A DNA stretch of 64,000 bases from Trichosphaerium sp. ATCC 40318 (GCA_038496445.1 JALMLS010000423.1:217445-281444), one strand, 5' to 3'; counted from the stretch's first letter, positions 28,428 through 53,190 are shown. A program made the numbers and translations. Notes: a model not told the origin generated them from the letters alone.

Positions 28428-29572
28428 ACGTCACGATCAAATGTTGTGTGCTTATTGTTCACTGACTACTCCGTGTGTTGGCTGTCTTTATAGTGCCCTT
28501 GGTTAAGTCTTGACTTGTTACTATTACAATTTTTCCCAATTCGAACGAATGGAGCAAACATGGGAGAATCTAAACTACCAAGATCTCACAACGTGTTGTG
28601 TGCCGAAATAGCTCGCCGCAAAAATTGTTTGTTCAATCTTTTAATATAAATACACTATGGCGCACAGGTTGGTCACTTTATAGCTTCTGATTATTAGTTT
28701 CGCTCTGTGAACTAAAATTGCATTGTCTCGCTAAAACAGCGTTTTACGTTCCTCTTGCACTATCTGGCACTTGTAATTACTCTCCCACGCTCGAACGTAC
28801 CTTTGGATGTTATTACACAGCAGTGTTTCGAGTTCATGGCGATCGCCTTTCAGGTGATATCAATTGGAAGATGAGGTAGCCAATACTACTGGTAATTGTT
28901 ATTACATCACGTGCTCGTTATTGACAAGCTTTGCAACAGGTTTGGCAGAAGATCAAAGTGCAAGTAGAACAGTTCTGTCAGATTTTGTAAAGTTTTGTTA
29001 TTTCTTGCAAGAACCGACAGCTTTGACAACAGCCAGTTCATCACTTTCTTAACTCATGACAACGTACCGTCTTCCCGTCCTTATGTACATTAAGGCAAGA
29101 CGAAAAGTAATGTCAAGAAGTTGCAAGATCTGTCAGACGAAAATGTGTTAACTGCTTGCCAAGTCCGCAATGTTATTGTATCGTGTGCACCAACAAGCTT
29201 CCAAATTTATCCGCTGTGGATGACTTTATCTATGATGTTAACAGCAAGCTCAAACGGGTATCGTGTGCATTGATAGACGTTCGCGGTAACGTGAACATCC
29301 ATTTTCGTAAACTCAATTTAACCGGAGAAGGTTCGCTATGAACCTGTTAATTCATATACATCATGTTGAGAACTGATTGTACCCACAGCGATAATATCAA
29401 ATCATTAAAGATGATACCATCTGTTTCACGTGTCACTGAAAATTCAGATTGCTGTCAAACTATTTACGTAAATCCAGGTCAGTAGCATTTTGTAAATTTA
29501 TTTCAGTAAATGATAAGAAATCTCTGTATCATTTTCGCATCTTTATTCACGTTTTGAAGACCACATACTTTG

Positions 29573-32500
29573 ATGCTACTGAAACGCACCTTCCGTAAGT
29601 AATTTGTACATACTTTCCTTCCATCAATATCCAGAAGGAAAGCAGCACTGTACAAAATCGGTACTTTACAAAACTAAATATTTAATAGCTATATACGCTC
29701 TCATATTATTATCAAGCGTTGGAGTAACTTTTAGTGCGATATCCCAAGACACAGCAATAAAAAATGCTGTTTTGTATCACGTTGATGCCACCAAGGTAAC
29801 TCAAAAAGCAAGGTAGTATCACGTTTTATATTAATTAATGCGTAGACCGTTCGCTTTGGTGCTTTTGGGTTTCAGTATACCATTGACTCTTTAGTTGGTG
29901 TCACACTGTCTAACGTTCAGTTTTTGGACATAAATAGCGGCAATGGCCAGTACCTATACGAAAAATACGATCGTAATGAGGTACACTTTTTAATTGGAAC
30001 CTAAAAACTCACACCTTTAGAACAACATAATACAAACAATGAATTGTGGTGGAACGTGCCAATCACGTGATCTTAAAACAAATGTATTACTCGATACCTT
30101 CCGATGGCCTTATGCACCTCCATATACTCGTTTTGTATCTGATGGAACGGTTTTCATTGACCACAGGCACAACACAGATCCGCCGTCACATCAAAGAGTT
30201 AGCGTGTACGTTTCAACCAAAGAGTATAACTTCAATTAACACTTTTTGGATTTAGGTCTAAGTATCTTACAAATGGCACTTTCGATCATCTTTATGGTAC
30301 TTTTCTAGGTATCAAAGAGTTGTATGCCACACCTAATGAACTCTTACGGTACAAACCAATTCACGTGACTTTTAAAAATGGGTAATTGCTCTTAGGGTTG
30401 TTTACCTTGATGGAACTATCGTAGACTTCAATGGTGATTATGTCGATGCTGCATTTTTCTATCAACAGCCAGATAATTGTACTGATATGCCTTGTGTGGA
30501 TACAACAGATCTCGTATTTGGTATTTTTATACTTGACATTGTCTTTTATCCTAACGTCGTGCAACTGGTTCAGTAATTCTATGTAGTTATTGATGCTTCT
30601 GAAGCTGCTTTGGGTAATACAGATTGTCTTATTGGAGGTACTTGACTCCTATTTCCTTCCGAGTATTTCTATTTGGTTTAATTTCAAAAGGTCAACCATG
30701 TCTAACGTCTGTAAACGGTTTTTTTGGAGAATACAACAGAACTTCTTTTGAAGAATGTTGTGAATTTTATAATTGGGATACATACTTTACTTTCATAAGA
30801 AACGAAATTGCAGGATTAAAGTTTGGAGAGTATGGTTTTCGTACTGGCATTGTTCTTTATCGTGATCAAGGTCATGTATCTCTACCTCTTGGAAGCTACA
30901 CAAAACAACATTTCTTGAATGAAATGGACAAAATTTATAGGCTTAATATTCCTGCTGGGTGTTCAAACGTTTCTTCAGGTAGTAGAAAATAGTTAAAATC
31001 TTGACACCGTGCGTTTTAATTGTTTTTTTATCAGGTCTTGATGTTGCACGTGACCTTTTTAAACAACACGGGCGAACAGATAGAAACAATAAAAAGATTG
31101 TAATCAATCAATACGGCAGTGATGTAAAGTGCGATGGTATTTCTGCGTCAATGATGGCATCAGACATGAGAAACGATGTGCGGACTATTTTTTTTCCAAA
31201 TTAATTGCCTGATAAAACAAACAGGGATTCACAATCCTATCGATCGAGATTGGTACTGGATCTACAAGTCTTGGACAAAACACAACATTTGTAGAAAATG
31301 TTGATAGACTAGCAGATGTCCTTGATACGTTTTCAAGTGGAATTTGCTCAAACGAAGGTAATACAAGATTATTAGATTTCCTCTTGAAATGTGCTTACTT
31401 TTTTGTTTCAGTTTCGAATCCATGTGGATCTTCATGCAATGGTATCTGTGATTGTGACCTTGCATGTACTTGTACAAAAACAATATGTGATGATGCAAAT
31501 CGTTGTACATACGATATATGCGAAGGACCTCACAAGGGATGTACATTTAATCCATTACCAATTTTGCCAAATACTGAACCTTCTATTTTCTGTAAGCTCA
31601 CTATATCACTCCTTTCTTCTCTTGAATTAATATTCGAATCTTAAGGTGGCAATGAAGAGTACTGTAATCCTAATTCTACGGCTCACAGGGCCGAAACACA
31701 TATTGCGGCTCTTCCTTATGTATCTAATTACATTGAAACAGATTGTATTGCCCATACACCTATGGAATGTGACCCTTCATGTGAATCTGCAGATGTATGC
31801 ACTACTAGTTGGTGTGATATTACGACAGGACAATGTGTAACTGAGAAAAGAGAACCAGGTTAATCAATATCTACTTTTTTTTGAACATCCTATTAACACA
31901 TCATAGGTGCATTGAGCTTTGGTTGCCTAGAACACGACCCACAAAATTTATATTATTGTGAGCCATCTACATTTCCACTAGGAACCTTCAAGGGATGTGC
32001 ATCGAAGCTTCTCAATGATGTACGTCAACATAACTCTCACTCAAATCAAACTGAACTTGACTAAACAATCTTCAACACCCGCACTTATTTTTTGATTGTA
32101 GATATGTTCCGAAAACGTTCCTGAATGTTCTATTTATGCTGAAGATCTTGAAAGTTGGCATCTAGTTCCTTTCAGTATCCCTGAAGCTCCAGGACAAACT
32201 TTTATGAATCCAGAATGTCTTTATGAACCATTACCAGCTTGTTATCAAATCGTTGCTCCAAAACCAGCACCAACAGCTCCACCAACAATACCACCAATAC
32301 CACCACCAACAAATACAACAAGCACCTTAGATGAGCCTTCTGGTAACTCAAACCGTATGTTAAACGGCCAGTTTTAACAAATTCTTGTCATCTCTTCTCA
32401 TCACTTCTTAGTGTCATGGATATTACCAATAGTGGTTGTAGCTTTTTTGCTTATTGCAATTTGTGTTGGAATATTCTTATGGTATTGGTGTTCAAGGAAG

Positions 32501-33645
32501 GAATCTTTAGTACGAAATGAAGACTCTATTGATATGGGTAACCATCCAAACGGAACTCAAGCTGAAGGTTTTCTGAAATACAGTGATCTCACACTTGGAA
32601 GAGAAATTGGTACCTAACTTTCTTTTGCCTTGTTCTTTTTCTTGCCTTACGGTTTGAGCAGGTTCTGGGAGTTTCGGGAGTGTACTGAAAGGTGTGTACA
32701 ATGGAAAACAAGTGGCGATAAAAGTGTCAACAACTGGAAATGAAGACAATCAAAGCTTTTTAAGAGAAGTACGTACAATACAACAATCTACTTGCGTGCA
32801 TTAATCACTCCTGTTATAGGTTGAAGTAAATCTTAATCTTCCACCACATCCAAATATAGTTGGTACTGTAGGTATGTGTTTAAATGATGGTAAACCGATA
32901 CTTGTATTGGAGTTCATGGCAAACGGATCATTGTCAGAGTTGTATGAGAAAAAACAGTCAGACTTTACTTTTGAAGAGATAAAACAATATCTTGTTTCAA
33001 TAGCTTGTGGCATGACATTCTTGCATGCAAATAGTATTGTTCACAGAGATCTGGCTTGTAGAAATGTACGACAACAGCATTCTATCTTTTTTCTTACTTA
33101 CTTCAATGTAGATTCTTGTACGCACATTCACTTCATTGAAGACTGAAGTTCTTATTTTCCTTGTAGTTATCAAAAAAAACATAACCAAAATAAGCGATTT
33201 TGGCATGTCAAGGTGAGCGAATATATGATATGTAACTGCATGTTAATTTTTTGTACAGAAAATTAGCTTTGGAAGGAGGACCAAATGAAACAGTAACAAA
33301 TATTGGTCCGATCAAATGGATGGCTCCAGAATCAATAGCTCTGCGCTACGAAACAGCTAGTGATGTACAAATAGACCATAATCCAAGTATCTTCTAATTC
33401 TTCTGTATTAGGTATGGTCATTTGGAATGCTTTCTTGGGAACTTATTAAAAGGACAACACCTTTTGGTAAAGTAAAAGATCTGTTTGATCTTGCTGTTAA
33501 AATCAGAGATGAAGGACATACACCAGAAGTCGATAATATTCATCCACATTGGATAAATTTGATGGAAGCTTGTTGGAAGTTTAATACATCTGATCGACCA
33601 ACATTTGAACACATTGAACAAACAATAGCCAACTTAGAAGAATAG
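29573..33645 (+). CDS. Receptor kinase copy 1: signal peptide, novel N-domain, VWA, Cys-rich repeats, Pro stalk, TM, tyrosine-kinase-like domain
   Basis: Signal peptide MLLKRTFPIYALILLSSVGVTFS; VWA DLVF|VIDASE...RTGIVLY; Cys repeat CDDANRCTYDICEGPHKGC; TM ILPIVVVAFLLIAICVGIFLWYW; kinase GSGSFG, VAIK, HRDLACRN|IL|L, DFG, GPIKWMAPE. Confidence 0.9.
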
Positions 33646-34164
33646 AAACAACCACAAAGAATCTTCATTGAAGGTTTCTCCGTAATTTAATAAAACACAT
33701 TACAATGAGCTTTTTTTTCAAGACCCCTACTATTCCAAAGCCACAAAACCAAACAAATTAAGTAGGCCCTTAGTTGTAAACTGCTTTATCTTGTTCAATA
33801 GTAAGAAATAACAGAACTTGGTTAGAACTGTACTATCTGTCACCCTTTAAGAGCTTTTACCCATCAAAAGTGTCAGTTCTGACAGTTCTACCCCAAGTTG
33901 GACAACCTTGAAGATCAGTCAAATCTCAAACTGTACCTGCAGATCAGTACATTCTTGGTTTTGTTCGCAAACTTGCTTGTGACGGACAATATTGTACCTA
34001 TACTGCTTTTACGAGTTAATGGCATTAATCGCCTTTCAAGTTAAATAATTGAAAAGACAAGGTAATAAATGCTACTTAACACAACAAGTATAGGTGACAT
34101 CACGTGCTTGTTGATAGTAATAGTTAAATATATTTTCAATAAGCTTACAGATTTTTGCAAAAGT

Positions 34165-34310
34165 TCGATGTCGATCAGATGTATTAAACTTCCAACAAGC
34201 TTCCATCACATTTATCCAATGTGAATGAATATTATCAACTTGTGGTGTATGTCCTTCATCTTTAGATCTCACAGCAAGATAAAACAGGTCTTTTACTTCA
34301 CCGAAAGAGT
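34165..34310 (-). pseudogene. Inverted fragment of the receptor-kinase last exon
   Basis: Reverse complement of about 33461-33600, translating FGEVKDLFYLAVRSKDEGHTPQVDNIHSHWINVMEACWKFNTSDR. Confidence 0.9.
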
Positions 34311-34397
34311 TCACGTGCTTTTTCGTTAAGTTAAGTCAATTAGAAAAGGTTGATCATTTTAGTAAATTTATTCCAGTACTGACCGCTACCTTCTTTA

Positions 34398-37300
34398 ATG
34401 CTACTGAAGCACGCCTTCCGTAAGTAATTTGTACATAGCTTTCCTTCCATCAATATCCAGAAGGAAAGCAGCACTGTACAAAATCAGAACTTTTACCAAA
34501 CTAAATATTTAATAGCTATATACGCTCTCATATTATTATCAAGCGTTGGAATAGCTTTCAGTGCGATATCACTTGACACAGCAATAAAAAACGCTGTTTT
34601 GTATCACGTTGACGCACCAAGGTAACTCAAAAAACGAGATATTAATCTGATGGGTTTTTTAATGACGTAAAAAGACAGTAAGGGTTGGCGCTTTTGGGTT
34701 TCTCTACGTAATTGACTCTTCTGTTGGTGTCACACGGGCTAACATTCGGTTTTTGGACATAAATAGCGTCAATGGCCAGTACCTATACGAAAATTACGAC
34801 CACGCTGAGGTACACTTTTCAATTGGAACTAAAAAACTCACACTTTTAGAACAAAATTGTCCAAACGATGAATTGTGGTGGAAATTGCCAATCACGTGAT
34901 CTTAAAACAAATGTATTACTCGATACCTTCCGATGGCCTTATGCACCTCCATATACTCGTTTTGTATCTGATGGAACGGTTTTCATTGACCACAGGCACA
35001 ACACAGACCCACCGTCACATCAAAGAGTCAGCGTGTACGTTTCAACAAAAAAAGATAACTCTTCAATTAACACTTTGGGATTTAGGTCTAAGTATCTTAC
35101 AAATGGCACTTTCGACCATCTTTATGGTACTTTTCTAGGTATCAAAGAGTTGTATGCCACACCTAATGAACTCTTACGGTATATACAATCATCATGTTCA
35201 GATAATTCACGTGATTTTTTTAAACGTTTAAAAACATATTAAATTTGCTCTTAGGGTTGTTTACCTTGATGGAACTATTGTAGATTTTAATGGTGATTAT
35301 GACGACAATCAATTCTTTGATCAGCCAGACGAATGCAGTGACATGCCTTGTGTGGATACAACAGATCTCGTATTCGGTATATTTTAATAGACTTTTTTGT
35401 AGTTAGCATCTTAACTTATTCACAATTTTGTGTAGTTATTGATGCTTCTGAAGCCACTTTGGGTAATGAAGGGTGTACTGTTGGAGGTACGTAGTCATAT
35501 TTTTGGGAAGAATGTCTCGTGCTTGTCTAACAATTCCGCAAGGTCAAACCTGTGCAGCGCCTGTAAAAGGTCTTTTTGGAGAATACAACAGAACTTCTTT
35601 TGAAGAATGTTGTGAATTTTATAATTGGGATACGTACTTTACTTTCATCCGGAATGAAGTTGCAGGATTAAAGTTTGGAGAGTATGGTTTTCGTACTGGC
35701 ATTGTTCTTTATCGTGATCAAGGTCATGTATCTCTACCTCTTGGAAGCTACACAAAACAACATTTCTTGAATGAAATGGACAAAATTCGTAGACTTAATA
35801 TTCCTGCTGGGTGTTCAAACGTTTCTTCAGGTAGTAGAAAATAGTTAAAATCTGGAACACTATTGCGTTTTAATTGTTTTTTTATCAGGGCTTGAAGTTG
35901 CACGTGATCTTTTTAAAAAACATGGACGAACAGATAGAAATAACAAAAAGATTGTTGTCAATCAATACGGCAGTGTAAAGTGTAATAATGATGTTTCTGC
36001 ATCAATGATGGTATCAGACATGAGAAACGATGTACGGACTACTTTTACCCTGAAATACAAATTGCATCTCATTTGTACAAACAGGGATTCACAATCCTAT
36101 CGATCGAGATTGGTACTGGATCTACAAGTCTTGGACAAAACACAACATCTGTAAAAAATGCAGATCGACTAGCAGATGTCCTTGATACGTTTTCACATGG
36201 AATTTGCTCAAACGAAGGTAATACAAGTTTTTACTTGGAATGTGCTTACTTTTTTGTTTTACAAAAGGTTCGAATCCATGTGGATCTTCATGCAATGGTA
36301 TCTGTGATTGTGACCTTGCATGTACTTGTACACAAACAATATGTGATGATGCAAATCGTTGTACATACGATGTATGTGAAGGACCTCACAAGGGATGTAC
36401 ATTTAATCCGCTGCCAATTTTTCCTAACTTTTCGCCTTCTATACACTGTAAGTTCACTGAATCACTCCTTTCTTCTCTTGAATTAATATTCGAATCTTAA
36501 GGTGGCAATGCAGAGTACTGTAAACCTGATTCTACTGCTCATAGGGTTGAGACAGAGTTTATGGCTCCTCCTTATGAAGGTACTTACATTGGAACAGATT
36601 GTATTGCGCATACACCTGTGGACTGTGACCCTTCATGTGAATCTTCAGATGTATGCACTACTAGTTGGTGTGATATTACAACAGGACAATGTGTTACTGA
36701 GAAAAGAGAACCAGGTTAATCAATATCTACTTTTTTTTGGACATCCTATTAACACATCATAGGTGCATTGAGCTTTGGTTGCCTAGAACGAGACCCACTA
36801 AACTTATTTTATTGTGAGGCTTCTGCAATGCCACTAGCCAGCTTCAGGGGATGTGCATCGAAACGCCTCAATGATGTACGTCAATGTAAATCACTCAAAC
36901 CAAACTGAACTTGATTTAAAATCTTCACTATTCTCACTGTACTCTATTGTTGGTAGATATGTTCCGAAAACATTCCTGAATGTACCACTTATGCCGAAGA
37001 TCTTGTTAGTTGGCATCTAGTTCCTTTCACTATCCCTGAAGCTCCAGGACAAACTTTTATGAATCCAGAATGTCTTTATGAACCATTACCAGCTTGTTAT
37101 CAAATCGTTGCTCCAAAACCAGCACCAACAGCTCCACCAACATTACCACCTCCCTCAGAACCTCCCTCCGAACCTCCAACAGAACAAGCGTTCGAACCTA
37201 CCTCAACAAACGCAACGAGCGCATTGGAGGGACCTTCTGGTATCTCAAACCGTAAGCAACTGAAACAACAAAATATTCAATACTTGACTCGTTTCTAATC

Positions 37301-38689
37301 ACCTTCTTAGTTGCATGGATACTACCAATAGTGATTGTGGCTCTTTTATTAATTGCAATTTGTGTTGGGATATTGTTGTGGTATTTTTGTTGTTACTCAA
37401 GGAAGTACAAGGTCCAAGAGTCATATGCGACAGCGACAGGAAATAAAGATTATGTTGATATGGGCAATCTGCCAAATAACGCACCTCAAGCTGAAGGTCT
37501 TCTGAAATATAGTGATCTCAAACTTGGAAAAGAAATTGGTACGAAGCCAATTACTAGCCTAAAAGAAACAAATTTACTCAACAATTAATCAAACTCTCAG
37601 TGAACTTGTCACGTGATTGTTGAATTTTATTGAATTTTTCGTTTTGTTTTTGCTTGTTTGCCTTACAGTTTGAACAGGTTCTGGTAGTTTTGGAAGTGTA
37701 TTGAAAGGTATGTACAAAGGAAAGGAAGTTGCGATAAAAGTGTCAACAACTGGAAACGAAGACAATCAAAGCTTTTTAAGAGAAGTATGTACAATTCAAC
37801 AATCTACTTGTGTATGTTACTCACTCCTGTAATAGGTTGAAGTAAATCTTAATCTTCCACCACATCCAAATATAGTTGGTACTGTAGGTATGTGTTTAAA
37901 TGATGGTAAACCGATACTTGTATTGGAGTTCATGGCAAATGGATCATTGTCAGAGTTGTATGAGAAAAAAAAATCAGACTTCACTTTCGCAGAGATACAA
38001 CAATATCTTGTTTCAATAGCTTGTGGCATGACATTCCTTCATGCAAATAGTATTGTTCACAGAGATTTGGCTTGTAGAAATGTACGACAACAGCATTATA
38101 TCTTTTTTCTTACTTACTTCAATGTAGATCCTTGTACGCACTTATACTTCAATGAAGGCAAACTAAATTTAACCTCTTATTTCACTCTAGTTATCAAGCA
38201 ATAACATAACCAAAATAAGTGATTTTGGCATGTCAAGGTGAGCGATTACACGGAACATATCATGTTGTTTCACGATATTGTACAACAAATAACATGTTTG
38301 ATCTAGAAAATCAGCTTTGGAAGGAGGACCAAATGAAACAGTAACAAATATCGGTCCAATCAGATGGATGGCTCCAGAATCAATATCTCTCCTTTACGAA
38401 ACAGCTAGTGATGTACAATTAACATACATCAAGACACGTTCTAACTGTATATCAGGTATGGTCATTTGGAATGCTTTCTTGGGAACTTATTAAAAGGACA
38501 ACACCGTTCGGTGAAATAAGAGATCTATTTGATCTTGCTGTCAAAATCAGAGATGAAGGACATACACCAGAAGTTGATAATATTCATCCACATTGGATAA
38601 ATTTGATGGAAGCTTGTTGGAAGTTTAATACATCTGATCGACCAACATTTGAACACATTGAACAAACCATAGCCAACTTAGAAGAATAG
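34398..38689 (+). CDS. Receptor kinase copy 2 (1-nt deletion at the end of exon 2; possibly a pseudogene)
   Basis: Same exon structure as copies 1 and 3. It has gacgcaccaag at about 34611 versus gacgccaccaag in copy 3. Kinase motifs are intact (HRDLACRN, GPIRWMAPE). Confidence 0.8.
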
Positions 38690-39304
38690 AAACAACACAA
38701 AGAATCTTCATTGGATTTCTCCATAATTTAATAAACCAGACATTACAACGAGCTTTTTTCAAGATCATACTGTTCCAAAGCCAAACCAAAAGAAAGTAGA
38801 ACATTCTGGTTTCTTCGCAAACTTGCTTGTGACTGACAATTTTGTACCCATACTACTTTTACAAGTTAGTGGCATAATCTCCTTTCAAGTATCAATAATT
38901 GAAAAGACAGGGTAATAAATGCTGCTTAGCGCAACAAGTATGTTACATCACGTGCTTGCTGATAGTTAGAATAATGGTTGCTCCAGCTAGGCAACTAATA
39001 CGCGATTGTTTGGGAGGAAAGACAACGTCTTAGTGGCTATCAATAGCACACTAATGTCGTGTATATTTGTACATAAAAGACTACAGTTGTGCGAATTACA
39101 TTATGTAAAGATATGAATTTTTTTTGAAAAGAACAAAATGAAGATTGCAAGGTGTTGATATTAGCCAGTTTAATCGTGTTAATGTGTCTTCTGTTGATTC
39201 CATAGTTGAGATCCAGTCTCACAAATTCAAACGCTAGCAGCGGCGTTTGAAATGGTGACATATTCATCCTAATAGTTGAACGAAAAATGGCCAACAAGCA
39301 CTTC

Positions 39305-39480
39305 CGATGTTTGCAAAAGTTCTCTGTTCAAGTGTTCGTCTATCAGATGCATTGAACTCCAATAAACTTCCATCACATTTATCCAATGTGAATGAATGTA
39401 GCACGTGTCCTTCATCTTTTGATCTTAAGAGTAAGGTAACAGATAAAACAGGTCTTTTACTTCACCGAAAGAGTTCACGT
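39305..39480 (-). pseudogene. Second, more degenerate inverted fragment of the kinase last exon
   Basis: Paralogous to 34150-34315 (ttccatcacatttatccaatgtgaatgaat...aaaacaggtcttttacttcaccgaaagagttcacgtg), with indels. Confidence 0.8.
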
Positions 39481-39561
39481 GCTTTTTCGTTAAGTTAAGT
39501 CAATTAGAAAAGGTTAATCATTTTAGTAAATTTATTCCAGTACTGACCGCTACCTTCTTTA

Positions 39562-42500
39562 ATGCTACTGAAGCACGCCTTCCGTAAGTAATTTGTACGT
39601 ACTTTCCTTCCATCAATATCCAGAAGGAAAGCAGCACTGTACAAAATCGGTACTGTACAAAACTAAATATTTAATAGCTTTATACGCTCTCATATTATTA
39701 TCAAGCGTTGGAATAGCTTTGAGTGCGGTATCCCTTGACTCAGCAATAAAAAATGCTGTTTTGTATCACGTTGACGCCACCAAGGTAACTCAAAAAACGA
39801 GATATTAATTTTACGGTTTTTAATGATGTAAAAAGACAGTTCGGGTTGGCGCTTTTGGGTTTCTCTATATTATCGACTCTTCTGTTGGTTTCTTAGAGTC
39901 TAATATTCAGTTTTTGGATGAAAGTAGCAGACGTGAGCAGTATCTACACGAAAAATACGATCATAATGAGGTACACTTTTTAATTGGAACCTAAAAAACT
40001 CACAACCTTTAGAGAAAAATTGTCCAAACAATGAATTGTGGTGGAACGTGCCAATCACGTGATCTTAAAACAAATGTATTACTCGATACCTTCCGATGGC
40101 CTTATGCACCTCCATATACTCGTTTTGTATCTGATGGAACGGTTTTCATTGACCACAGGCACAACACAGATCCGCCGTCACATCAACGAGTCAGCGTGTA
40201 AGTTCCTGAAAAAAAAAAATTGATAAACGTATTGACCAGCCTTTGGATTTAGGTCTAAGTATATCACAAACGGCACTTTCGACCATCTTTATGGTACTTT
40301 TCTAGGTATCAAAGAGTTGTATGCCACACCTAATGAACTCTTACGGTACAAACCAATTCATCAGTGTTCAGATAATTCACGTGATTTTTTTATGCAAAAA
40401 AAAATTATTAAATTTGCTCTTAGGGTTGTTTACCTTGATGGAACTATTGTAGATTTTAATGGTGATTATGACGACGATCAATTCTTTGATCAGCAACCAG
40501 ACGAGTGCAGTGATATGCCTTGTGTGGATACAACAGATCTCGTATTCGGTATATTTTAATAGACTTTTTTGTAGTTAGCATCTTAACTTATTCACAATTT
40601 TGTGTAGTTATTGATGCTTCTGAAGCCACTTTGGGTAATGAAGGGTGTACTGTTGGAGGTACTTAGTCATGTTTTTGGAAGGAAGGTTTAACAATTTCGC
40701 AAGGTCAAACATGTGGAGCGCCTGTAAAAGGTCTTTTTGGAGAATACAACAGAACTTCTTTTGAAGAATGTTGCGAGTTCTATAATTGGGATACATACTT
40801 TACTTTCATAAGAAACGAAATTGCAGGATTAAAGTTTGGAGAGTATGGTTTTCGTACTGGCATTGTTCTTTATCGTGATCAAGGTCATGTATCTCTACCT
40901 CTTGGAAGCTACACAAAACAACATTTCTTGAATGAAATGGACAAAATTCGTAGACTTAATATTCCTGCTGGATGTTCAAACGTTTCTTCAGGTAGTACAT
41001 TAGTTACAAAATAAGTGCTGCAATTGTTGTTTTTTTTTGAATACTTAGTTGTTTATCAGGGCTTGAAGTTGCACGTGATCTTTTTAAAAAACATGGTCGA
41101 ACAGATAGAAATAACAAAAAGATTGTTGTCAATCAATACGGCAGTGTAAAGTGTAATAATGATGTTTCTGCGTCAATGATGGCATCAGACATGAGAAATG
41201 ATGTACGGACTACTTTTACCCGAAATACAAATTGCATCTCATTTGTACAAACAGGGATTCACAATCCTATCGATCGAGATTGGTACTGGATCTACAAGTC
41301 TTGGACAAAATACAACATCTGTAAAAAATGCAGATCGACTAGCAGATGTCCTTGATACGTTTTCACGTGGAATTTGCTCAAACGAAGGTAATACAAGATT
41401 TTCTCTTGAAATGTGCTTACTTTTTTGTTTTACAAAAGGTTCGAATCCATGTGGATCTTCATGCAATGGTATCTGTGATTGTGACCTTGCATGTACTTGT
41501 ACACAAACAATATGTGATGATGCAAATCGTTGTACAGAAGATATATGCGAAGGACCTCACAAGGGATGTACATTTAATCCGCTTCCAATTTTTCCTAACT
41601 TTTCGCCTTCTATACACTGTAAGTTCACTATATCACTCCTTTCTTCTCTTGAATTAATATTCGAATCTTAAGGTGGCAACGAAGAGTACTGTAAACCTGA
41701 TTCTACTGCTCATAGGGCTGAAGTAACGTTTTTTGCTCCTCCTTTTACACGTAATTACATTGGAACAGATTGTATTGCCCATACACCTATGGACTGTGAC
41801 CCTTCATGTGAATCTTCAGATGTATGCACTACTAGTTGGTGTGATATTACAACAGGACAATGTGTAACTGAGAAAAGAGAACCAGGTTAATCAATATCTA
41901 CTTTTATTTTGTTTTTAACATTTTTACCAGGCGCATTGAGCTTTGGTTGCCTAGAACACGATCCACAAAATTTATATTATTGTGAGCCTTCTGCATTTCC
42001 ACTAGGAACCTTCAGGGGATGTGCATCGAGGCTTCTTAATAATGTACGTCAACATAACTCTCACTCAAATCAAACTGAACTTGACCAACAAATTGTTTAC
42101 TATATTACATTTCTTGCACTCATTTTGACTATTTCTCGTGCTAATTTTTGTAGATATGTTCTGAAAACATTCCTGAATGTACCACTTATGCTGAAGATCT
42201 TGTTAGTTGGCATCTAGTTCCTTTCACTATCCCTGAAGCTCCAGGACAAACTTTTATGAATCCAGAATGTCTTTATGAACCATTACCAGCTTGTTATCAA
42301 ATCGTTGCTCCAAAACCAGCACCAACAGCTCCACCAACATTACCACCTCCCTCAGAACCTACCTCAGAACCCCCAACAGAACAAGCGTTCGAACCTACCT
42401 CAACAAACGCAACGAGCGCATTGGAGGGACCTTCTGGTATCTCAAACCGTAAGCAACTGAAACAACAAAATATTCAATACTTGACTTGTTTCTAATCACC

Positions 42501-43931
42501 TTCTTAGTTGCATGGATACTACCAATAGTGATTGTGGCTCTTTTATTCATTGTAATTTGTGTTGGGATATTGTTGTGGTATTTTTGTTGTCACTCAAGGA
42601 AGTACAAGGTCCAAGAGTCTTTTATTGCAACAAATAAAGATTATGTTGATATGGGCAATCTACCAAATAACGCGCCTCAAGCTGAAGGTCTTCTGAAATA
42701 TAGTGATCTCACACTTGGAAAAGAAATTGGTACAAAGCCAATTATTAGCCTAAAAGAAACAAATTTACTCAACAATTAATCAAACTCTCAGTGAACTTCA
42801 CGTGATTTGATTTTGATCAATTTGAATTTTCATTTTTTTTCCTAGTTTACCTACGGTTCTTTTTGTTTTGTTCTTTTTCTTGCCTTACAGTTTGAACAGG
42901 TTCTGGGAGTTTCGGAAGTGTATTGAAAGGTATGTACAAAGGAAAGGAAGTTGCGATAAAAGTGTCAACAACTGGAAACGAAGACAATCAAAGCTTTTTA
43001 AGAGAAGTATGTACAATACAACAATCTACTTGTTATGTTATTCACTCCTGTTATAGGTTGAAGTAAATCTTAATCTTCCACCACATCCAAATATAGTTGG
43101 TACTGTAGGTATGTGTCTGAATGATGGTAAACCGATACTTGTATTGGAGTTCATGGCAAACGGATCATTGTCAGAGTTGTATGAGAAAAAAAAATCAGAC
43201 TTCACTTTCGCAGAGATACAACAATATCTTGTTTCAATAGCTTGTGGTATGACATTCCTACATGCAAATAGTATTGTTCATAGAGATTTGGCTTGTAGAA
43301 ACGTACGACAAAAACAAACTTGTACTTATCTTTCCTTCTTTTTCTTACTTACTTCAATGTAGATTCTTGTACGCACTTACACTTCAATGAAGACAACTAA
43401 AGTTAACCTCTCATTTTTACTCTAGTTATCAAGCAATAACGTAACCAAAATAAGCGATTTTGGCATGTCAAGGTGAGCGATTACACTAAAACGTAACAGC
43501 ATGTTTCTGATTCGCGATTATTGTACAAAAAATAATATGTTTGACTAGAAAATCAGCATTGGAAGGAGGACCAAATGAAACAGTAACAAATATTGGTCCG
43601 ATCAGATGGATGGCTCCAGAATCAATATCTCTCCTTTACGAAACAGCTAGTGATGTACAATTAACATACATCAAGACACGTACTAACTGTATATTAGGTA
43701 TGGTCATTTGGAATGCTTTCTTGGGAGCTTATTAAAAGAACAACACCTTTCGGTGAAATAAGAGATCTATTTGATCTTGCTGTCAAAATCAGAGATGAAG
43801 GACATACACCAGAAGTCGATAATATTCATCCACATTGGATAAATTTGATGGAAGCTTGTTGGAAGTTTAATACATCTGATAGGCCAACATTTGAACACAT
43901 TGAACAAACAATAGCCAACTTAGAAGAATAG
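39562..43931 (+). CDS. Receptor kinase copy 3 (VWA ectodomain, tyrosine-kinase-like)
   Basis: Same architecture as copy 1, and the exons checked splice in frame. Juxtamembrane KDYVDM; kinase HRDLACRN and GPIRWMAPE. Confidence 0.9.
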
Positions 43932-44193
43932 AAACAACCACAAGCAATAATAGCGAATTTAGAAAAAATAGAAGCAACCACACAAAGAATCTTCATCGAA
44001 GATTTCTCCGTAATTTAATAAAAAATTTTGCACGAACTCGTAGCACGTGACCAGTAACTCGAGGTTTTTTCTAAACAACATTTTTTAATTGTGTATTATG
44101 TGGAGTAGATACTATATGAGCGGACGAAACACTTTTGAATAAAAAAACTGATTAATTTAAGTTTACGAAACAAACATATCTGTTTGTACGGTT

Positions 44194-46783
44194 TTACATC
44201 TCCTCATCTTGCATGTATGCACCCAAGAAACCAGGATCAGCGCCTAAAAATACGTATAAGTGGTAATTACTTAACCCAAAGTGGAAGACTTTTAATCAAT
44301 AAGAGGCGCATGTCGCATAGTGTTAAAAAAAATCACGTACTCTTCGCAGGAGTAGGTTTTTTTGTAACAAAGTACTGTTGGTATTTTGACCCAGGACAAC
44401 TCTTCCTCAAGTATAAGGCATCGCGAACTTTATTACTCAAGAAAGTTGGCAAATTTCCCTAGGAGACAAACCGTTAGCAACAGAGTAAAAAAAAATGAGA
44501 TAATTCAAGTACTTACTTTTACTGCTACTTTTCCTTTTGGCGTCCTCAAAGAATACCCTGTTTGATCTATTCGCAAACCAATCAGCTGAGCGTATTGCAC
44601 ATATATATTTGCGTAGTCTCCATTGATGGACTGTTAAACAACGTACCAGAGTTTGCCATAATACGTTGATGTGTAACATTTTGATTACGATCAACTTTAG
44701 ATATTGTGAAAGGTGTCTGTCTGGCAGTACTGCTAGATAATCGAACAAGAAAAGTTCCTTTCTTTTCCTCAAGTAAAAGCTGTTCTGCATCTTCTTTTGA
44801 AATATCACCAAAGTACCATCTAATTAAAACCAAGTAAGAAAAAAGAAGTTTTGTGCTCATCGTACTTTTGCTTCACTGTGGCCATTATACGTTGCATAAA
44901 TTTATCATTCAAAGGCCCAAATCTATCTAAAAGATCTCCTAAATCTTGAGCTTTTACTGTTAGATCACCCATGTGATCTTTTTTTGCTAAACAGCAAATA
45001 TTAGCCAAAGAAAAAAAAAAGACTGGTAGTGCACTTACCTAATAATTCCAAAAGTATTTTATACTCTGTCTCTGATGGATCTCTGAATGCAGAAGATGTA
45101 ACAACAACCTTTGCTAGACCTTTAACGAATTTTCTAAACACTACAGACGTCTATAAAGACTTTGTTAGATACAACAAAGCGAGGGAGAATAGCAAAAAAA
45201 AAAGGAATACCTCCGCTTGGAAGTTTTCCATCCAAAATTTCTGTCCTGCTTCATCTTCAATTGTACATTTGATCATAGCAGTTTGTAGTGATGGTATTAA
45301 ATCGTCAAAAGAAGGTCTTTCTGCAGCATCATGCTATAGGCAATTAATCTCATTCAAAAAAAAAAAAAAGGAAAAAGAAAAGAGTTGTAACCGTACTGCC
45401 CAACTTTGTTTAATAATCTCTGCGATATGCACAGGTACTACTCTATCATCAATCTTAGGACGTTCCTAGATAAACGTGAGATCATTTATAAATGCGACAA
45501 GTCAGAAAAACCCGTACATATTTGGCAACAGAGTCTTTAAATGTATTGAAATCCCTCGAATCATGGAAAGGTGCTCGTTTAGCAAATAAATGATAAACAC
45601 AAACAGCCCAACCATATACATCAGCTTTTGCTGTGATTATAGTAGCGCGATCAATGACTTCTGGAGATAAATAACGGAACTACTTAGACGTTAGCTCCAC
45701 GCCAGAAAACGAAATTTTTTTAAGTTACCTCTGTTGCTGTTAAGGTTGATCTATCTTTCTCTGTTTGTTTATGATCACCAGTGATACTTGCTGATAAATC
45801 AGCTATTTTAACACGCCATGCTTTATTTACTAATAAAGTATTCGGTTGAACATTTTTATGAATGACAGGAGGAATAGAGCAATGAAGCCAATTGAGACCC
45901 TACAACAACCATATTTTGTAAGTTTTTTTTCTCTTAATTTTCTGGTTTATACCTGAGCTATATCCATAGCCATACGCATCCGTTGGTGTATTTCTAAGTC
46001 GTCGCCATGTGCCTATAACTGATGTTAACGAATCATTAATTTTAAGTGTCATTGACGCTCAATACAATCACTAAAAATACATACCTGCAATACTTCACTG
46101 AGAGTTCCTCTTTCAGCGTATTCTGTTACAATGGCATAATGACCATCTTCAAAACAACATCCCATGAATAAGACGACGTTTGGATGGCGTAAGTGCCTAA
46201 AAGAATCAGTTTAAAGGTTTTCTAAATTAACTGGGTGTTGTGGGAGTCAATTTTGCTGTTTGTGCTTACACTAGTACGCTAACTTCACTATGAAATGCGT
46301 CCAATTGCTTTTGGGACAGATTGGTTTGGGACAATTTCTTAATAGCAACATCTTTGCCTCTGCAGCTGCCTTTCCAGTACTCCCCGACAGTGTCCTTACT
46401 TATTCGGGTAAGGTATTCAAGTTCATCTGTAGGAGGTTAGATATGTTAAAATTATACTCGTATCGATTTTTACTGCATTCTGAACGCCATTGGACGCAGT
46501 GCGCAGTACAAATGATTATTTTTTTGGCACAAGTACCTTTTTCTATCTCTAGAGTGTCTAGTTGACCTTCTTTCAACATAACTGCCGATTGTGACGCATC
46601 AATACCGGTGCCTTCTTCAGAACCTTCGATTTTATCTTCTTCGTCTTCTATTATCATATTCAGAGTGTCATTTAACCGTGTAACTACGTCTTTGATCTTT
46701 GAGCGTATTTCATCGCTCTTTAACCCCTGACGCTGAAATATATCCTTCAAGGTCTGTTTAGTCGCTTTTTCTAAGCGAGCCAT
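44194..46783 (-). CDS. Shk-like TKL pseudokinase + SH2 domain protein, multi-exon
   Basis: Kinase fold (CRGKDVAIKK, LRHPNVVLFMGCC, ADVYGW, CWAHDAAERPSF) with HKNVQPNT and DLS in place of HRDLKxxN and DFG. SH2 reads WYFGDISKEDAEQLLLEEKKGTFLVRLSSS. The layout matches Dictyostelium Shk kinases. Confidence 0.88.
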
Positions 46784-47115
46784 GCTTTGGTGTGGTTTTT
46801 AACTCAGTTTAAAATAATAATTTTGTTAAATTTAGTACAGAAACAGCTTCCGATACAAACAAAGATATCTTTTAACGAGTATTTTCTAGGGTACACAACC
46901 ATTCAAGAAATGCTTTTTAGCGAAATGGACCTGGTTCGTAAACCGGTTTGCTTGAACCGTTCCTTACTGAATATGGTCTACCACAACGTAGGAAAGTAGA
47001 GACGTGTAGTAGCGTGCGCTTGTTAAAATATTATTTCAGCAGGTTCTGTGAACGGAACTTAGATTGACGCAGTTTTTTCGATTACAAAAATACTGGCAAA
47101 ACGCAATAGCCACAT

Positions 47116-49474
47116 ATGAACTTCACGGCGTTGGTAGATAACGTAACGGAGTTTAAAGATGATCTACAGCAAACAGAGATGCCTCTACCTGTAGAGAGCT
47201 TTAATGCTTTGGAACAAATTTACAATCATATTAAAAATCAACTGGATATAACTATACATCTGTTACTTGACGATCCAGGCAATGATTTTAGTTTAATTGA
47301 AATTTTGCTACAGTCCAATGATTCTTTGGATGGGTACTGGCTACGTTTTAAAACGCGTGTGGAAGCCTCAAAAAGCGAACCAAAAAGCGGCGTAGAAAGT
47401 ACAGGTGTCGTTAACCCCTTCAAAGATGATGTTATCACGTACGTTTTGATAGTAGAAGGTTAATACGTACTTATGGCGTGTAGTAGCGAAGCGGATAAAA
47501 TAAGCGAAAGAGAAGATGGAATTGTAATAGTTGTAAAGGGAGAAAAGGGTAGCGGAGAGGATAAAGAAGATAAAATAGAGAATAAATCAGAAGAAAAAGA
47601 CGATGTTAAAGATGATACAGACCAACCGGCACAGAAACCTCGTAAAAGGAGGCGTAAGAAGCGACGAAATGTACAGAAAGAGAAGGAGGATGAAGAAGAG
47701 CAAGAACCTATCATTAGAAAAAAGAAACGTAAAAAGAAACTCCCCGAGACTATCGAGTGCCCTATATGTATTGACGATGTTAAAATGGAGGACGCGTATA
47801 TGTTTGATTGTGGTCATAGCTATTGTAGAGAAGTACGTAACCCTCTTCGCCCATAAAACCGATAATCAACTTTTTTGTGTTTTTTTTTTCCATTTTTTTA
47901 TTTTATTTAAAGTCGGCTCTTTCAAACCTAAACCACTATATTATGGTTTATCATTAGTTGTGTGCTTTTAGAGCTTAATCATAGCGTAATCGTAGCACCA
48001 TAATCTACAAAAACTGCACACAACTTTTCGGTTTTTTATTTCTTCTATTTCCCCGTTTTAGAAAGGAAATGGCTATATTTAAATACGTGCTAATGTGGGT
48101 TTTTTTTGTAGTGTCTTGATATGTATGTAAAGGAGAAAATCAACCAAAACGACGTTTTAGATCTTTGTTGCCCTCACCCTGAATGTGACTCTGAGATACC
48201 ACATAATCACTTGAAAGAGCTTGTGGATACAGAAACGTTTGATAGATATGATGAGCTTGCACTAAAGGCTGCTCTTAATAGAGGTATGTCTCTTTGAACA
48301 ACGTTTCCTAAAAAGCCAAAAAACCCGCGAAAGTCAAAGCGGTTTTTTTTTTCCGTTTTTTACTCTCAAGAGGATGAATGATGTCTCTTTGTTGTTGTTC
48401 TTCCTGTTGATGTTGACGTTCTATTTTAGATCCTAATTGTAGATGGTGTCCTAGTTGTGGTGATGCGATAATTGGTGATCCTCAATATAGAAGACTTCGT
48501 TGTTATAGTTGTTCCCATGAGTTCTGTTTTGAGTGTAATGAAGATGTACGTCAAAAGCGATTACCATTGAAAAAAAAACCACATAATTTTTTTGTTGGGT
48601 TTTTCGTTTGTTTATGACCTCGTTATCAACCATCATTCTTATTTCGTTTAGTTTCACGTGGGAACTTGTGAAGATTTTCAAAAGTGGAAAGTGGAAAATG
48701 GCTTAGTTGATGAAAAGTACGTAACAGCTCCTCTCCATCGATGAGTTTTTCTTTTTTTTTTTTTTTATGAAAATAGACTTAATGTGAAACTGTGTTCTAA
48801 CTTTTGTCCTTTTTAGATATGTAGAATGGGCCGATGAAAATACAAGAAAGTGTCCAAAGTGTAAATCTAGAATCCAAAAAAATAGTGGTACGTATCCATT
48901 TCCACGCTTTTTTTTTTGAAACGGCATGAGGACGTTTTTTCTCGATTTTTTTCTCGTTTCATTTCTCCTTTATTTGGTATCCCAACAACCAGTCTACTTG
49001 TGTAGATATTTATTTGTGTATTTACTCATTTAAAAATAGGATGTAATCATATGACATGTGGTAATTGTAACTATCAGTTTTGTTGGTTATGTGGTAGAAA
49101 ATATACTTCAAATCATTTCGATGTTTGGAATGTTTTAGGATGTCCTGCACTTCAGTCAGGTAAAAAAGAAAATTATGGTGCTGCTAGACGTATGGGTATG
49201 CGTATTGGTATAGCTACAGGCATAGGAGCAGCTGTGGTACGTTAAATTTCTTTCAAAAGTGATTGAGATGTATAAACTAAATTTTTTTTTATAGATATTC
49301 GGTGGTGCTCTTGCACTTGCTCTTGCTATTCCTGTTCTTGTCATTGGTGGTCCTATATTTGGTGGATACCATTTTGTAAAGTACCGAAGGCGTAAAAGAA
49401 AACGTAAGGCTAGATATCTTCCTACTCCTCGTAAGATAAACAGGGACGACATTGATGACCTGGACATACTGTAA
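47116..49474 (+). CDS. RBR (RING1-IBR-RING2) E3 ubiquitin ligase with N-terminal GAT-like helical domain and C-terminal membrane segment
   Basis: RING1 CPICIDD...CGHSYCRE|C; IBR WCPSCG...[12 protein letters not shown]; RING2 [13 protein letters not shown]|[17 protein letters not shown]; hydrophobic Gly-rich tail [10 protein letters not shown]|[21 protein letters not shown]-terminal [12 protein letters not shown] resembles the last GAT helix. Confidence 0.9.
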
Positions 49475-50226
49475 AATCAATCAAAAAAAAGATTTGAAGA
49501 AAATGGTCCTGCATAACGTCATGTGGGTGTTTTTTTAACTCAAAATGTAACAATACAAACTCAATTACCTTGTACTTGTGTTTATATCTTTCTACATGTT
49601 GTTCGCCGCTATAGTGCTACTGATAAATTCTTTAAAAGACATATTTAACTAAAGCAGTGGTGTTAATAACTCGAGTTCAGTTGACTTGAAGTAGTTTAAA
49701 GTTGAAGTCAAACTGTTCGTCGTTCAGTAGCTCTATATTAACTTGTGTTTTATGGCATATGGTGATCATTGTACAAATAGCGTGAGTAGAACAGACGATG
49801 GACTTGGATTATACGATAAAAAATGTAGCTATAATCCAATTGTTACTTCGGCATTACTCATAACCTACACGTTATTTATCCCTCATGAGTTTTATGAGTT
49901 CTAGCTCGTAGCTAAATAGTTTCCTTGTTAACATGAACCACGTGATCACAGTGATGAACAAAACCGCTTTCTCAACATATGAATTATCGTTACTCTTTAT
50001 TTGTCGACGATTGTCCTGGTCAATTCCAGAGCTTTTTGCAATATAAATAACTCCATTAGGGTGAAGAAAATAGGTTTTTGCAAAGGCACTTAGTGAGACG
50101 TGTTTTTGGTGAGATGCAACAAAAGTATGCCAAACTTAACATTTTAGCACGAGTTTTCACTGAAATCACGCAGTGACATCACCATCTACGCTTTATTCTT
50201 CTTTTTTCTAGTTACTTATAATCAAA

Positions 50227-51503
50227 ATGAGCGAACCAGAGCCGTTTCACATTAATGTTAGATTCAGTGGCTCAAAATCAGCTAAAACAGTTCAAATCAA
50301 CGATTCACTAGGTCTTGATGCTGTAATTAAGGCTTGTTGTAACAAATTCGCTGCTAAAGGGAACCTTGGTTTGCGAGACATCAAAAACGGTAAAATCATC
50401 GATGATGTCGCTTCGATTACGCCAAAAGGAACGTACATACTATACAAAGTGAAAACAAAAACAAAAGCTGGCAAAGTAGAACCAGAGATAAAATGGGAAG
50501 CAATAGGCAAAGGCCGCTTTGCACTATGGCATAGGTACGCAAACTATTTACTTTACAGCCCTGTGAGAAGCACTCACAAACCAAAAAACCGAAGAAAATG
50601 TAAACAAATACTTTACCATTTTTTTTGCAATCTCAAACTCTATGCATGTTTTATCCATAATATGGTACTCTAGGCCTAAGCAACAGACAATCCATGGTTT
50701 ACATAAAATAGGTTGTAGTCACGTGGTAACAATACAAGGGACCAATGAGCATGCTGAGGTCGTAGGTGTGATTAAGATTGTCAACCTTCATACAGTGTTT
50801 GCTTACCACACGTAGGAGAATGGTGTGCTGCTGCAAACATCACTTGGATTTGGTATGATCGGTACTGATATTTTCTATTTTGCTAGTTATCTAATTGAAC
50901 ATACAAGACCTAACGGTAAAGTACCTGAATCATTGGATGAGTTCGAAAGCATAGTTGAGTTCTTAGAAAAAATAATAGTTGCAATTGACTCTGGTTGTTC
51001 TGTGCTTATACACTGGTACAACTAAAACTAACGTGTATATTGCCTACTGATATGATATACAGCTCCGCAGGCCTTCATAGGACAGGCATGTTCTCCAATT
51101 TATTACTGAGATACTTCGGCCTATCTGAAGAAGAAGCTTTGAATAAAATCAAAAACTCGAGAGATAAAACAGGTACTATTCGACTTTTTATTACTAATAA
51201 TCACGTGCCATATTACTACTACTATTCCCCCCTTGTACTGTATGCAGTGCATTATAAAGTACATTGCTTTCAACAGTACAGAGTGCAGTAGTGATCTCCT
51301 ATTGGCTCAAACTGTAGCAATTTTTTTTTGGAAATTACAGTTTTAGTTGTCGCGCTTAACCAGCTTTGAACTTACTTTATTTTACAGCTAAAGGTGTTGG
51401 TGAACATAGACTGGGATTTGCAACCGATTTTATACGTGTTGTGGGTACACGAGACAACCCAACAGATAAGAAAAACTGGAGCGATTTGTATGAAAGTAAA
51501 TAA
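50227..51503 (+). CDS. Protein tyrosine/dual-specificity phosphatase (CX5R) with N-terminal ubiquitin-like (beta-grasp) domain
   Basis: Splicing cac tg|c tcc gives VLIHCSAGLHRTG, an intact HCX5R motif. The N-terminus ...VIKACCNKFAAKG..LRDIKNGKIIDDVASITPKGTYIL resembles KHA/DCX-like beta-grasp domains. Confidence 0.85.
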
Positions 51504-51749: not shown

Positions 51750-52596
51750 TTAATAGCGGAGAACAGGTATGTAAGACGGTGCAGTTACATCATCCTCGTT
51801 CCAACTCAATCAAAACGCAGAGTCTATCGAAGAAATATATTGTTGTTAGAATCATACAGTATCATAGTTTTCGTAAACTACATCATCTTTCTTTGTACTA
51901 CAGCAGCATATACATGCTACAATGACAGTAACAATTGCACCCAATACCAACAGGCCACCGATAGATGAACCCACAATAACTATGATTAGCAAGTCTCGTA
52001 GTCCTCTGGGACATTTCTCAGTACTGCAAGCTGGACCATCGCCTCCACTATTGCATAGTTAGTCAGGTCATTGGGTGCCTAGGTTTTGGGAGTTATGGGA
52101 CTACAGATGTCAACACTGTGTAGTTCATGTCTTGCTGCAGAGCCGTAAAATAGATTCATGTAAGTTATATCAAATTTAAGGTTGGAGACCTTTCGGGAAC
52201 ATCAGGAACCATGTGATGCACCCCGTCAAATCAAATTACGTACTTTCCACAATAGTTACATCCTGGCCGTTTTAAACACCTTTCTTTGGCGTACATTTGG
52301 CCACAGAAGCCTTGGTAAATAATGTCAAGTCAAGTCAAGATAATTGTCGACAATTACTGTAGTCGTATTTCGCGAAGCGCTTCTCGAGAACAAAGTAGCG
52401 TACATAATACTTCTGGCGTGTAATGACACTGTCCATAGGTGCTGTTATAGTAGCATTCAGTGGGACACGTAATCGGTGTGTACGTTCGAATTGTAGGTGC
52501 ACTAGTTGTAGTAACATCAGTCGTATTTTGAGCATAGGAACAAGACGCAAGTGCGAGTAATAGAATTACAGTAATACTACCGAGAAAAGGAGCCAT
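51750..52596 (-). CDS. Small single-pass Cys-rich surface protein (PSI-like); 3' end uncertain
   Basis: Signal peptide MAPFLGSITVILLLALASCSYA, a Thr-rich stretch, Cys-rich CFCGQMYAKERCLKRPGCNYC, and TM LLIIVIVGSSIGGLLVLGAIVTVIVACICCC. Confidence 0.65.
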
Positions 52597-53190
52597 GTTT
52601 GTCTGTTTAAGTAAGAAGTTCGCCAAAAAAAGTCAAAGTAAAGTCTAGGTCCAACTTTTACCAATTTACTTTTCGAGACTGTGGTGTACCCGTATTCAAA
52701 GGCCTTAACACACATCAGTAGCGCAGTAAGATAAATTGTAGGCCTTCACTCGAGAGAAATTGCAAAAAGTCACTTCACTTGCAAACGCCAATTCACATGA
52801 GAGTCTTCCTGGTGCATGTACCTTGGCTAAAAGCGTACACCTTTACTTGTTAGTCTGTAGTATTCCATTGTTTCCTTATCTAGCTTACAATGACAGAAAG
52901 ATAAGTTGTGCTGGGCAGATGGCTTATTTTGATGAGCGAATGTAAGTAATTATGGTGTAGCTCCATACATTTTGACATTAGCTACAAAACAGTATAGTGC
53001 TCTTCTTCCAATTATAACTGAAGTACGATGAACTATAAAACCAGTACACTTCAGCCTAAACTTGTAGAGTTGCATAAGGCTACCTATGTTCAAACCTCCC
53101 GAATAATCAGGCCTAGCGCAAGCACAAAATAGCGTTACTTCAGGTCAAGGCCTTACAACATTTTAAACATAACTTGAAGTGTATGTTTAT

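Follow-up and report, generated by a model that had tools for sequence, protein, structure and literature searches.

Phosphotyrosine (pTyr) signalling of the metazoan type is known in Amoebozoa. In the portions of the two reports considered here, Acanthamoeba castellanii is credited with 22 protein tyrosine kinases, seven of them with a transmembrane (TM) helix, 12 protein tyrosine phosphatases (PTPs) and 48 SH2 proteins (PMC4053784), and Physarum polycephalum with four tyrosine kinases (TKs; three with a TM helix) and 18 SH2 proteins (PMC4758236); neither species is described in those portions as having its TK, SH2 and phosphatase genes in physical clusters. Here we describe a run of six consecutive genes at positions 29573-51503 of a 64,000-nucleotide stretch of DNA from Trichosphaerium sp. 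ATCC 40318 (GCA_038496445.1, JALMLS010000423.1:217445-281444; hereafter the window), which comprises three receptor kinases, an SH2 pseudokinase, an RBR ubiquitin ligase and a cysteine phosphatase. As far as the same portions describe them, the TKs of Acanthamoeba and Physarum resemble the receptors found here in the HRDLA-x-RN loop, the P-I-[KR]-W-M-APE motif, the single TM helix, the non-metazoan ectodomain and the coexistence with many SH2 proteins; the VWA-like and Cys-rich-repeat ectodomain and the tandem triplication set the Trichosphaerium receptors apart.

The adjacency of the six genes is probably an accident of gene order in a signalling-rich genome and not the mark of a co-inherited or co-regulated cassette. 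A gene for a TK-type receptor kinase with a VWA ectodomain would have been triplicated recently in tandem, and the array would lie beside three unrelated single-copy genes encoding a Shk-like SH2 pseudokinase, a membrane-anchored RBR ligase and an atypical phosphatase resembling the dual-specificity phosphatases (DSPs). The SH2 pseudokinase would be a likely pTyr-binding scaffold, and each gene would act in the general phosphotyrosine, ubiquitin or phosphatase networks of the cell. Chance remains the simplest reading; it was named as a caveat in the preliminary description of this DNA, which had itself proposed a cassette. The run of six consecutive genes given in that description was confirmed by motifs, Pfam matches, open gene models and the RNA-confirmed splicing of the last three genes. 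Gene structures, domain content and the transcription and splicing of these three genes are shown here. The main contribution of the locus at present is a set of well-supported gene models within the metazoan-type pTyr signalling known from Amoebozoa: a TK-type array of probable VWA receptors, an SH2 pseudokinase, a helical-headed membrane RBR ligase and an orphan-headed atypical phosphatase.

The Trichosphaerium draft genome comprises 70.9 Mb with 37.7% GC in 710 scaffolds, with 27,369 transcripts, a mean intron of 75 bp and a mean exon of 154 bp (PMC10521059), and has approximately 2.6 kb per gene. The window has a GC content of 34-40% and 22 confirmed or modelled introns of 45-279 bp. It contains few long open reading frames (ORFs), and its coding sequence lies in short stop-free pieces, in keeping with an intron-rich eukaryote. 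Public runs matching this DNA date from 2015 and 2022-2024, and four of them were mapped (X1, X2, X3 and X9). The RNA evidence consists of contigs from three studies, which show presence and neither absence nor expression level. Contigs on the SH2, ligase and phosphatase genes are at least 99% identical to the DNA, and their GT-AG joints keep all three ORFs open. Pfam, Protein Data Bank (PDB), language-model and structure searches of the spliced genes were made exon by exon.

Gene order, transcription and chance

The receptor genes on the plus strand converge with the SH2 gene on the minus strand, and because of this orientation the array and the SH2 gene cannot share a promoter. The SH2 and ligase genes stand head to head, with 332 bp between their start codons (about 330 bp in the preliminary description, which was right on this point) and approximately 266 bp between their transcript 5' ends, and are the only pair with a common 5' region. 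The ligase and phosphatase genes lie in tandem approximately 750 bp apart, with zero RNA depth between them. The upstream regions of the receptor, SH2/ligase and phosphatase genes contain no common k-mer beyond shuffled controls. The duplication unit is the receptor alone and ends at about 44023; the window contains one copy each of the SH2, ligase and phosphatase genes. Contigs of both the SH2 gene and the ligase were found in all four RNA runs. Phosphatase contigs were found in X1 and X2 but were practically lacking in X3 and X9, both of which contain the ligase; since contigs show presence and not absence, this discordance is weak evidence.

As a co-inherited cassette, the run would operate through receptors that autophosphorylate on tyrosine, an SH2 protein that reads the juxtamembrane pTyr, a GAT-like RBR ligase that down-regulates the receptors and a phosphatase that resets the system. 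The four types of component lie next to one another in intact form, and the nominal chance probability of such an adjacency is low. However, the partner genes were not duplicated together with the receptor, the gene orientation and the lack of a common upstream motif oppose shared regulation, and phosphatase contigs are missing from two runs that contain the ligase. The positive evidence for this hypothesis consists of the adjacency and of the one 5' region common to the SH2 and ligase genes, and we consider a cassette improbable. If true as a linked unit, the run would be a rare eukaryotic case of non-homologous signalling genes kept together, and a compact natural system for the pre-animal wiring of writer, reader, eraser and ubiquitin-based receptor down-regulation.

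The expected frequency of adjacency was simulated using random gene order, 27,369 genes and assumed family sizes. The latter were guided by counts in other amoebae and by approximately 3,000 of the 27,369 rows of Table S2 of PMC10521059, which contain 111 'kinase', three 'SH2' and 39 'phosphatase' descriptions. An SH2 gene fell immediately beside some TK locus in 2-59% of the simulated genomes. Several points weigh against an accident of gene order. An SH2 gene and a Cys phosphatase both fell within three genes of a TK locus in approximately 0.1-5% of the genomes, so that the TK/SH2/phosphatase adjacency is nominally unusual, with the qualification that the chance figures rest on guessed inputs and on a pattern defined after seeing the data. 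Head-to-head genes with short spacing, such as the approximately 266 bp between the SH2 and ligase transcripts, are often co-regulated. On scaffold 00067 in Table S2 of Tekle et al. (2023; PMC10521059), the 'PTPN9-like' TRSP11975 adjoins TRSP11976, an 'SH2 domain-containing protein'; either the genome contains a further phosphatase/SH2 neighbourhood or the gene caller cut a single SHP-like gene in two, and the pair hints at a possible clustering of pTyr genes beyond random expectation. With these points taken into account, an accident of gene order is still preferred, and we infer both the biochemical activities of the six products and the absence of any dedicated functional connection between them.

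The receptor kinase array

The three receptor genes, at 29573-33645 (copy 1), 34398-38689 (copy 2) and 39562-43931 (copy 3), all on the plus strand, were modelled with a program that chains exons, trained on the window's RNA-validated genes. Open 20-exon models with GT-AG introns run from ATG codons at 29573, 34398 and 39562 to a shared stop and encode 966, 990 and 991 residues, respectively. The products consist of a signal peptide or anchor, a VWA-like domain, a Cys-rich region, one TM helix and a TK-type kinase. The models contain no C-terminal docking tail, a further point against a receptor-centred cassette.

The array is built of direct repeat units at 29528-34352, 34353-39516 and 39517 to about 44023, which are 82-87% identical (blastn of 29000-34500 against the window; MAFFT profile). 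In the MAFFT profile most of the alignment between copies 2 and 3 shows 95-99% identity, with patchy divergence of copy 1. The identity between copies is a mosaic (38-42 kb compared with 29-33 kb), with blocks of 95-100% alternating with blocks of 45-65%, notably in the exon of VWA strand beta1 and in the juxtamembrane region; this pattern is compatible with gene conversion and local diversification.

Tandem copies, or indeed the whole gene run, could also arise from misassembly or from mis-modelled genes. The genome is a long-read assembly, and exon 2 of copy 2 as assembled carries, within 34461-34625, two homopolymer indels relative to copies 1 and 3 (+1 in a T run at about 34494 and -1 in a C run at about 34617), between which the conserved reading frame of the signal peptide is shifted. 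The indel pair could reflect either a genuine lesion or a mistake of the long-read assembly. However, the copies are not collapsed or duplicated products of assembly, since they diverge by 13-18% with mosaic patches, and the RNA contigs from three studies (at least 99% identity) support the SH2, ligase and phosphatase models. An artefact therefore appears very improbable as the source of the run.

By the criteria applied to Physarum and Acanthamoeba, the sequence motifs place the receptor kinases in the TK type. HRDLACRN, ISDFGMSR and GPI[K/R]WMAPE each occur once per copy in all three copies, and in each copy ISDFGMSR ends a tiny exon. The catalytic loop is of the HRDLAARN type (not HRDLKxxN) in all three, and GPIKWMAPE (copy 1) and GPIRWMAPE agree with the pattern P-[IV]-[KR]-W-[MT]-APE. 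The catalytic residues are intact in the exon translations (GSGSFGSV, VAIKV, FLRE, HRD and DFG). Among Pfam families, PK_Tyr_Ser-Thr (8.9e-21) fits the kinase exons better than Pkinase does. In single-exon searches of the PDB, the best matches of the catalytic-loop exon were JAK1, EGFR, EphA7 and MET, and those of the last kinase exon (C-lobe) were ILK followed by RON, InsR and ABL.

The identity of the ectodomain as VWA is likely, short of proof, as judged from weaker sequence matches. All three copies contain the beta1 strand DLVFVIDASEA, in which Ala replaces the second Ser of the MIDAS motif (DxSxS). The exon after beta1 gave sub-threshold PDB matches to the integrin alpha2 I domain and the collagen VI VWA domain (E = 0.18-0.35), and ten of the 11 weak PDB matches of the ectodomain exon were VWA or I domains. 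Single ectodomain exons gave no Pfam VWA match; the sole Pfam signal there was a weak match of the Cys-rich part to the Dicty_CTDC repeat. Of the earlier description of these genes as three VWA-ectodomain TK receptors, the TK signatures and the tandem copies thus stand, and the VWA assignment is retained as likely.

Two inverted fragments of the last kinase exon, not mentioned in the preliminary description, accompany the array. One lies between copies 1 and 2 (34170-34307, minus strand; 90% identical to 33461-33598 by blastn) and the other between copies 2 and 3 (39325-39471, minus strand; approximately 75% identical). Each is located approximately 500 bp 3' of the stop codon of the preceding copy and is paired with the exon as a long inverted repeat. 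Copy 3 is followed by no fragment of this kind.

The SH2 pseudokinase and the RBR ligase

In the Dictyostelium Shk family a TKL-type kinase domain is followed by a C-terminal SH2 domain. The SH2 gene of Trichosphaerium (44585-46783, minus strand, approximately 522 residues) shares this domain order: an acidic or coiled N-terminus, a TKL-like pseudokinase, a helical linker and a C-terminal SH2 domain. It differs from the Shk proteins in its kinase motifs. HKNVQPNT stands in place of HRDLKxxN, with loss of the catalytic Asp, Lys and Asn, DLS stands in place of DFG, and the glycine loop, SKDTVG, is degenerate; the kinase is therefore predicted to be inactive. The SH2 domain matches Pfam PF00017 at 2.3e-13 (profile positions 1-60 of 77) and retains the FLVR arginine (GTFLVRLSS); the kinase pieces were also matched by Pfam. 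These motifs make the product a pseudokinase whose SH2 domain is probably competent to read pTyr, and its earlier placement as an SH2 pseudokinase tail to tail with the receptors is borne out.

From the ATG at 46783 the ORF stays open across the kinase as far as the SH2 exon with GT-AG introns, three of which were confirmed by RNA (45680-45728, 45900-45952 and 46013-46084), and the transcript extends 5' to 46813 or further. With an optional last intron the coding sequence could run to about 44440; the C-terminal third of the SH2 domain depends on a predicted last splice. One RNA contig from 2015 runs 911 nt past the edge of the mapped stretch; judged by exon lengths this extension is long enough to include the SH2 exon, so that the kinase and the SH2 domain would lie in one transcript.

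The best PDB match of the SH2 exon is the N-SH2 domain of p85alpha, and it covers only the conserved N-terminal half of the domain. Ligands of p85alpha N-SH2 are of the form pYxxM. The juxtamembrane segments of the receptors (32480-32520, 37420-37460 and 42610-42650) contain KDYVDMG in copies 2 and 3, in which YVDM is a YxxM motif, and EDSIDMG in copy 1. A receptor cassette read by the neighbouring SH2 protein gains from the YVDM of copies 2 and 3 and loses from copy 1, which lacks the juxtamembrane tyrosine. The occurrence of YxxM next to a gene with a p85alpha-like SH2 domain may be a coincidence.

Ligases of the RNF144 type combine a RING1-IBR-RING2 core with a C-terminal TM helix. The Trichosphaerium ligase (47116-49474, plus strand, 490 residues in eight exons) resembles them in its RBR core and hydrophobic C-terminal anchor and has in addition an N-terminal three-helix bundle and a long charged linker. 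Its layout is a three-helix N-terminal domain, the charged linker, RING1, IBR, RING2, the hydrophobic anchor and a basic tail; the long hydrophobic stretch at the C-terminus is followed by ten further residues. The ORF is open across seven introns confirmed by contigs from three studies, and the 5' end of the mRNA, marked by a SMART template-switch oligo, lies at 47080. Pfam matches on the exons were RING (2.5e-5), IBR (5.3e-9) and, on the RING2 exon, IBR_1 (3.4e-8). RING1, IBR and RING2 are colinear in the ORF, and RING2 carries the catalytic Cys in GCNHMTC. The best PDB sequence match of the RING2 exon is the Ariadne-type RBR of CUL9.

The first exon of the ligase gave no Pfam GAT match. It was modelled by AlphaFold2 as a three-helix bundle, with a predicted local distance difference test score of 80 in one of five models. 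A Foldseek search with this model ranked the GAT domains of Tom1 and GGA3 first at E = 0.16-0.5 (Tom1, 0.16). With VIA-align the GAT domain of GGA1 (Z = 10.6) was tied with spectrin repeats (Z = 10.9), and Z values of this size are common for helical bundles according to the warning of the structural search tool itself. The model thus points to a generic three-helix bundle in which a GAT identity is not established. In the preliminary assignment of a GAT-RBR-TM ligase, the RBR with its catalytic Cys and the hydrophobic anchor hold; the GAT label, with matches no better than those to spectrin repeats, is too strong. No relative of the N-terminal exon was found in metagenome contigs. The RING2 exon matched 80 metagenome loci; these are of no use for synteny since all are generic RBR matches, on contigs mostly shorter than 6 kb.

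The head-to-head intergenic region of the SH2 and ligase genes (46814-47079, no strand assigned), delimited by RNA contig ends and the template-switch oligo, is a candidate bidirectional promoter. The two genes might form a functional pair expressed from it, an analogue of Cbl or of Tribbles-COP1, in which the SH2 pseudokinase would dock pTyr-bearing membrane proteins, not necessarily the neighbouring receptors, and present them to the ligase for ubiquitination and down-regulation. The combination of an SH2 reader with a RING-type ligase recalls Cbl, in which both are parts of one chain; here they are encoded by neighbouring genes. The short spacing, the presence of both transcripts in all four RNA runs, the retention of FLVR with loss of the catalytic-loop Asp, Lys and Asn, which fits a scaffold, and a ligase with both a catalytic Cys and a membrane anchor are consistent with such a pair. 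So is a weak PDB match of the pseudokinase C-lobe exon to Tribbles-1, an E3 adaptor (E = 0.002), but this match is marginal and tied with that to TNNI3K of the TKL group. Moreover, head-to-head pairs are common in compact genomes such as this one, with its gene every 2.6 kb or so, and need not be related, and no orthologous pair was found by HMMER searches of 1.84 billion representatives or by searches of metagenome contigs. The pair is the most defensible narrower functional idea, and we regard it as unlikely, if less so than a cassette of the whole run.

The phosphatase and the flanking genes

The cysteine phosphatase gene (50227-51503, plus strand) encodes 259 residues in six exons. All five introns were confirmed by RNA, including a phase-2 intron that splits the P-loop (HC|SAGLHRTG), and the RNA places the start of exon 4 at 50908. 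The intact HCSAGLHRTG motif noted in the preliminary description is therefore present in an expressed, spliced ORF; the P-loop has the form VLIHC-x5-R-TG and is followed by a helix, in agreement with HCx5R(S/T). The catalytic part spans approximately 155 residues, and an Asp 37 residues N-terminal to the Cys is a candidate general acid. The exon translations contain no WPD motif, single exons gave no Pfam match at E values up to 10, and a PDB phmmer search with the P-loop exon returned nothing relevant. The language-model neighbours of this exon all belong to Y_phosphatase3, PTP-SAK and DSPc, with scores of 0.82-0.88 that serve as leads only.

A classical PTP has a catalytic domain of approximately 280 residues with a pTyr-recognition loop, a WPD loop and a Q-loop. 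With its catalytic part little more than half as long, no WPD motif and no single-exon Pfam match, the present phosphatase falls outside the classical pTyr-specific PTPs (Y_phosphatase), and its sequence features are those of a short, atypical DSP-like Cys-based enzyme. It resembles the atypical DSPs and bacterial-like PTPs (Y_phosphatase3, PTP-SAK and DSPc) in its short domain, its P-loop followed by a helix and its upstream Asp; it differs from them in the missing single-exon Pfam match and in an orphan N-terminal region of approximately 100 residues. A DSP-like domain of this length lacking visible classical-PTP motifs does not imply pTyr specificity. The CX5R signature behind the proposed role of pTyr eraser is intact, and the eraser label itself is too strong. 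Since the enzyme is not a classical PTP, the writer/reader/eraser triad is also weakened.

The first 102 residues of the phosphatase have a low-confidence beta-grasp-like look. A search for homologous proteins with exon 1 gave no match. A HMMER search against 1.84 billion representatives gave five weak matches, all to repetitive bacterial or surface proteins; these were rejected as spurious on account of their unrelated Pfam content and repetitive nature, and no true relative of the N-terminal region was found among the representatives. A possible ubiquitin-like head on the phosphatase and a possible ubiquitin-binding-like bundle on the ligase, both weak and suggested by models, would speak for a cassette; the DSP-like character of the phosphatase and the lack of an established GAT domain speak against it. 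Still more doubtful is a fully linked pTyr circuit in which the receptors are read by an SH2 pseudokinase co-transcribed from one bidirectional promoter with the RBR ligase as a split Cbl-like device for down-regulation, with a phosphatase bearing a ubiquitin-like head as a third partner.

Compared with the window, the X1 contigs show single-base differences at several sites across the SH2, ligase and phosphatase genes. The X1 set also has three bases fewer at 47692, in the low-complexity, charged linker of the ligase (47617-47796). The base differences suggest allelic or strain variation between the public samples.

The run is flanked on both sides by the kinds of gene described previously, a Rho-GTPase/kinase/SAM gene upstream and a single-pass Cys-rich gene downstream, the expected domains and features having been found in each. 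The upstream gene (24632-28305, minus strand), identified by motif and Pfam, combines a Ras-family GTPase, a Ser/Thr-type kinase (HRDIKSQN) and a SAM domain. The downstream gene (51855-52626, minus strand), for which no Pfam match was obtained, encodes a signal peptide, a Cys-rich ectodomain, a TM helix and a short tail, as seen from sequence features. The tail ends in DDVVYENYDTV, with two tyrosines in a YxN-type context.

Beyond the 24.6-51.5 kb interval, the window contains F-box/LRR, carbohydrate-active-like and orphan genes and no signalling island. An exact look-up of a single-exon F-box/LRR ORF returned no record. Several F-box/LRR-type genes are scattered through the window (5007-6292, 23003-24337 and 53194-53940, minus strand) with a recurring leucine-rich repeat, AGVHTI(D/N)L, and the gene at 53194-53940 matches the Pfam families F-box-like and LRR_6.

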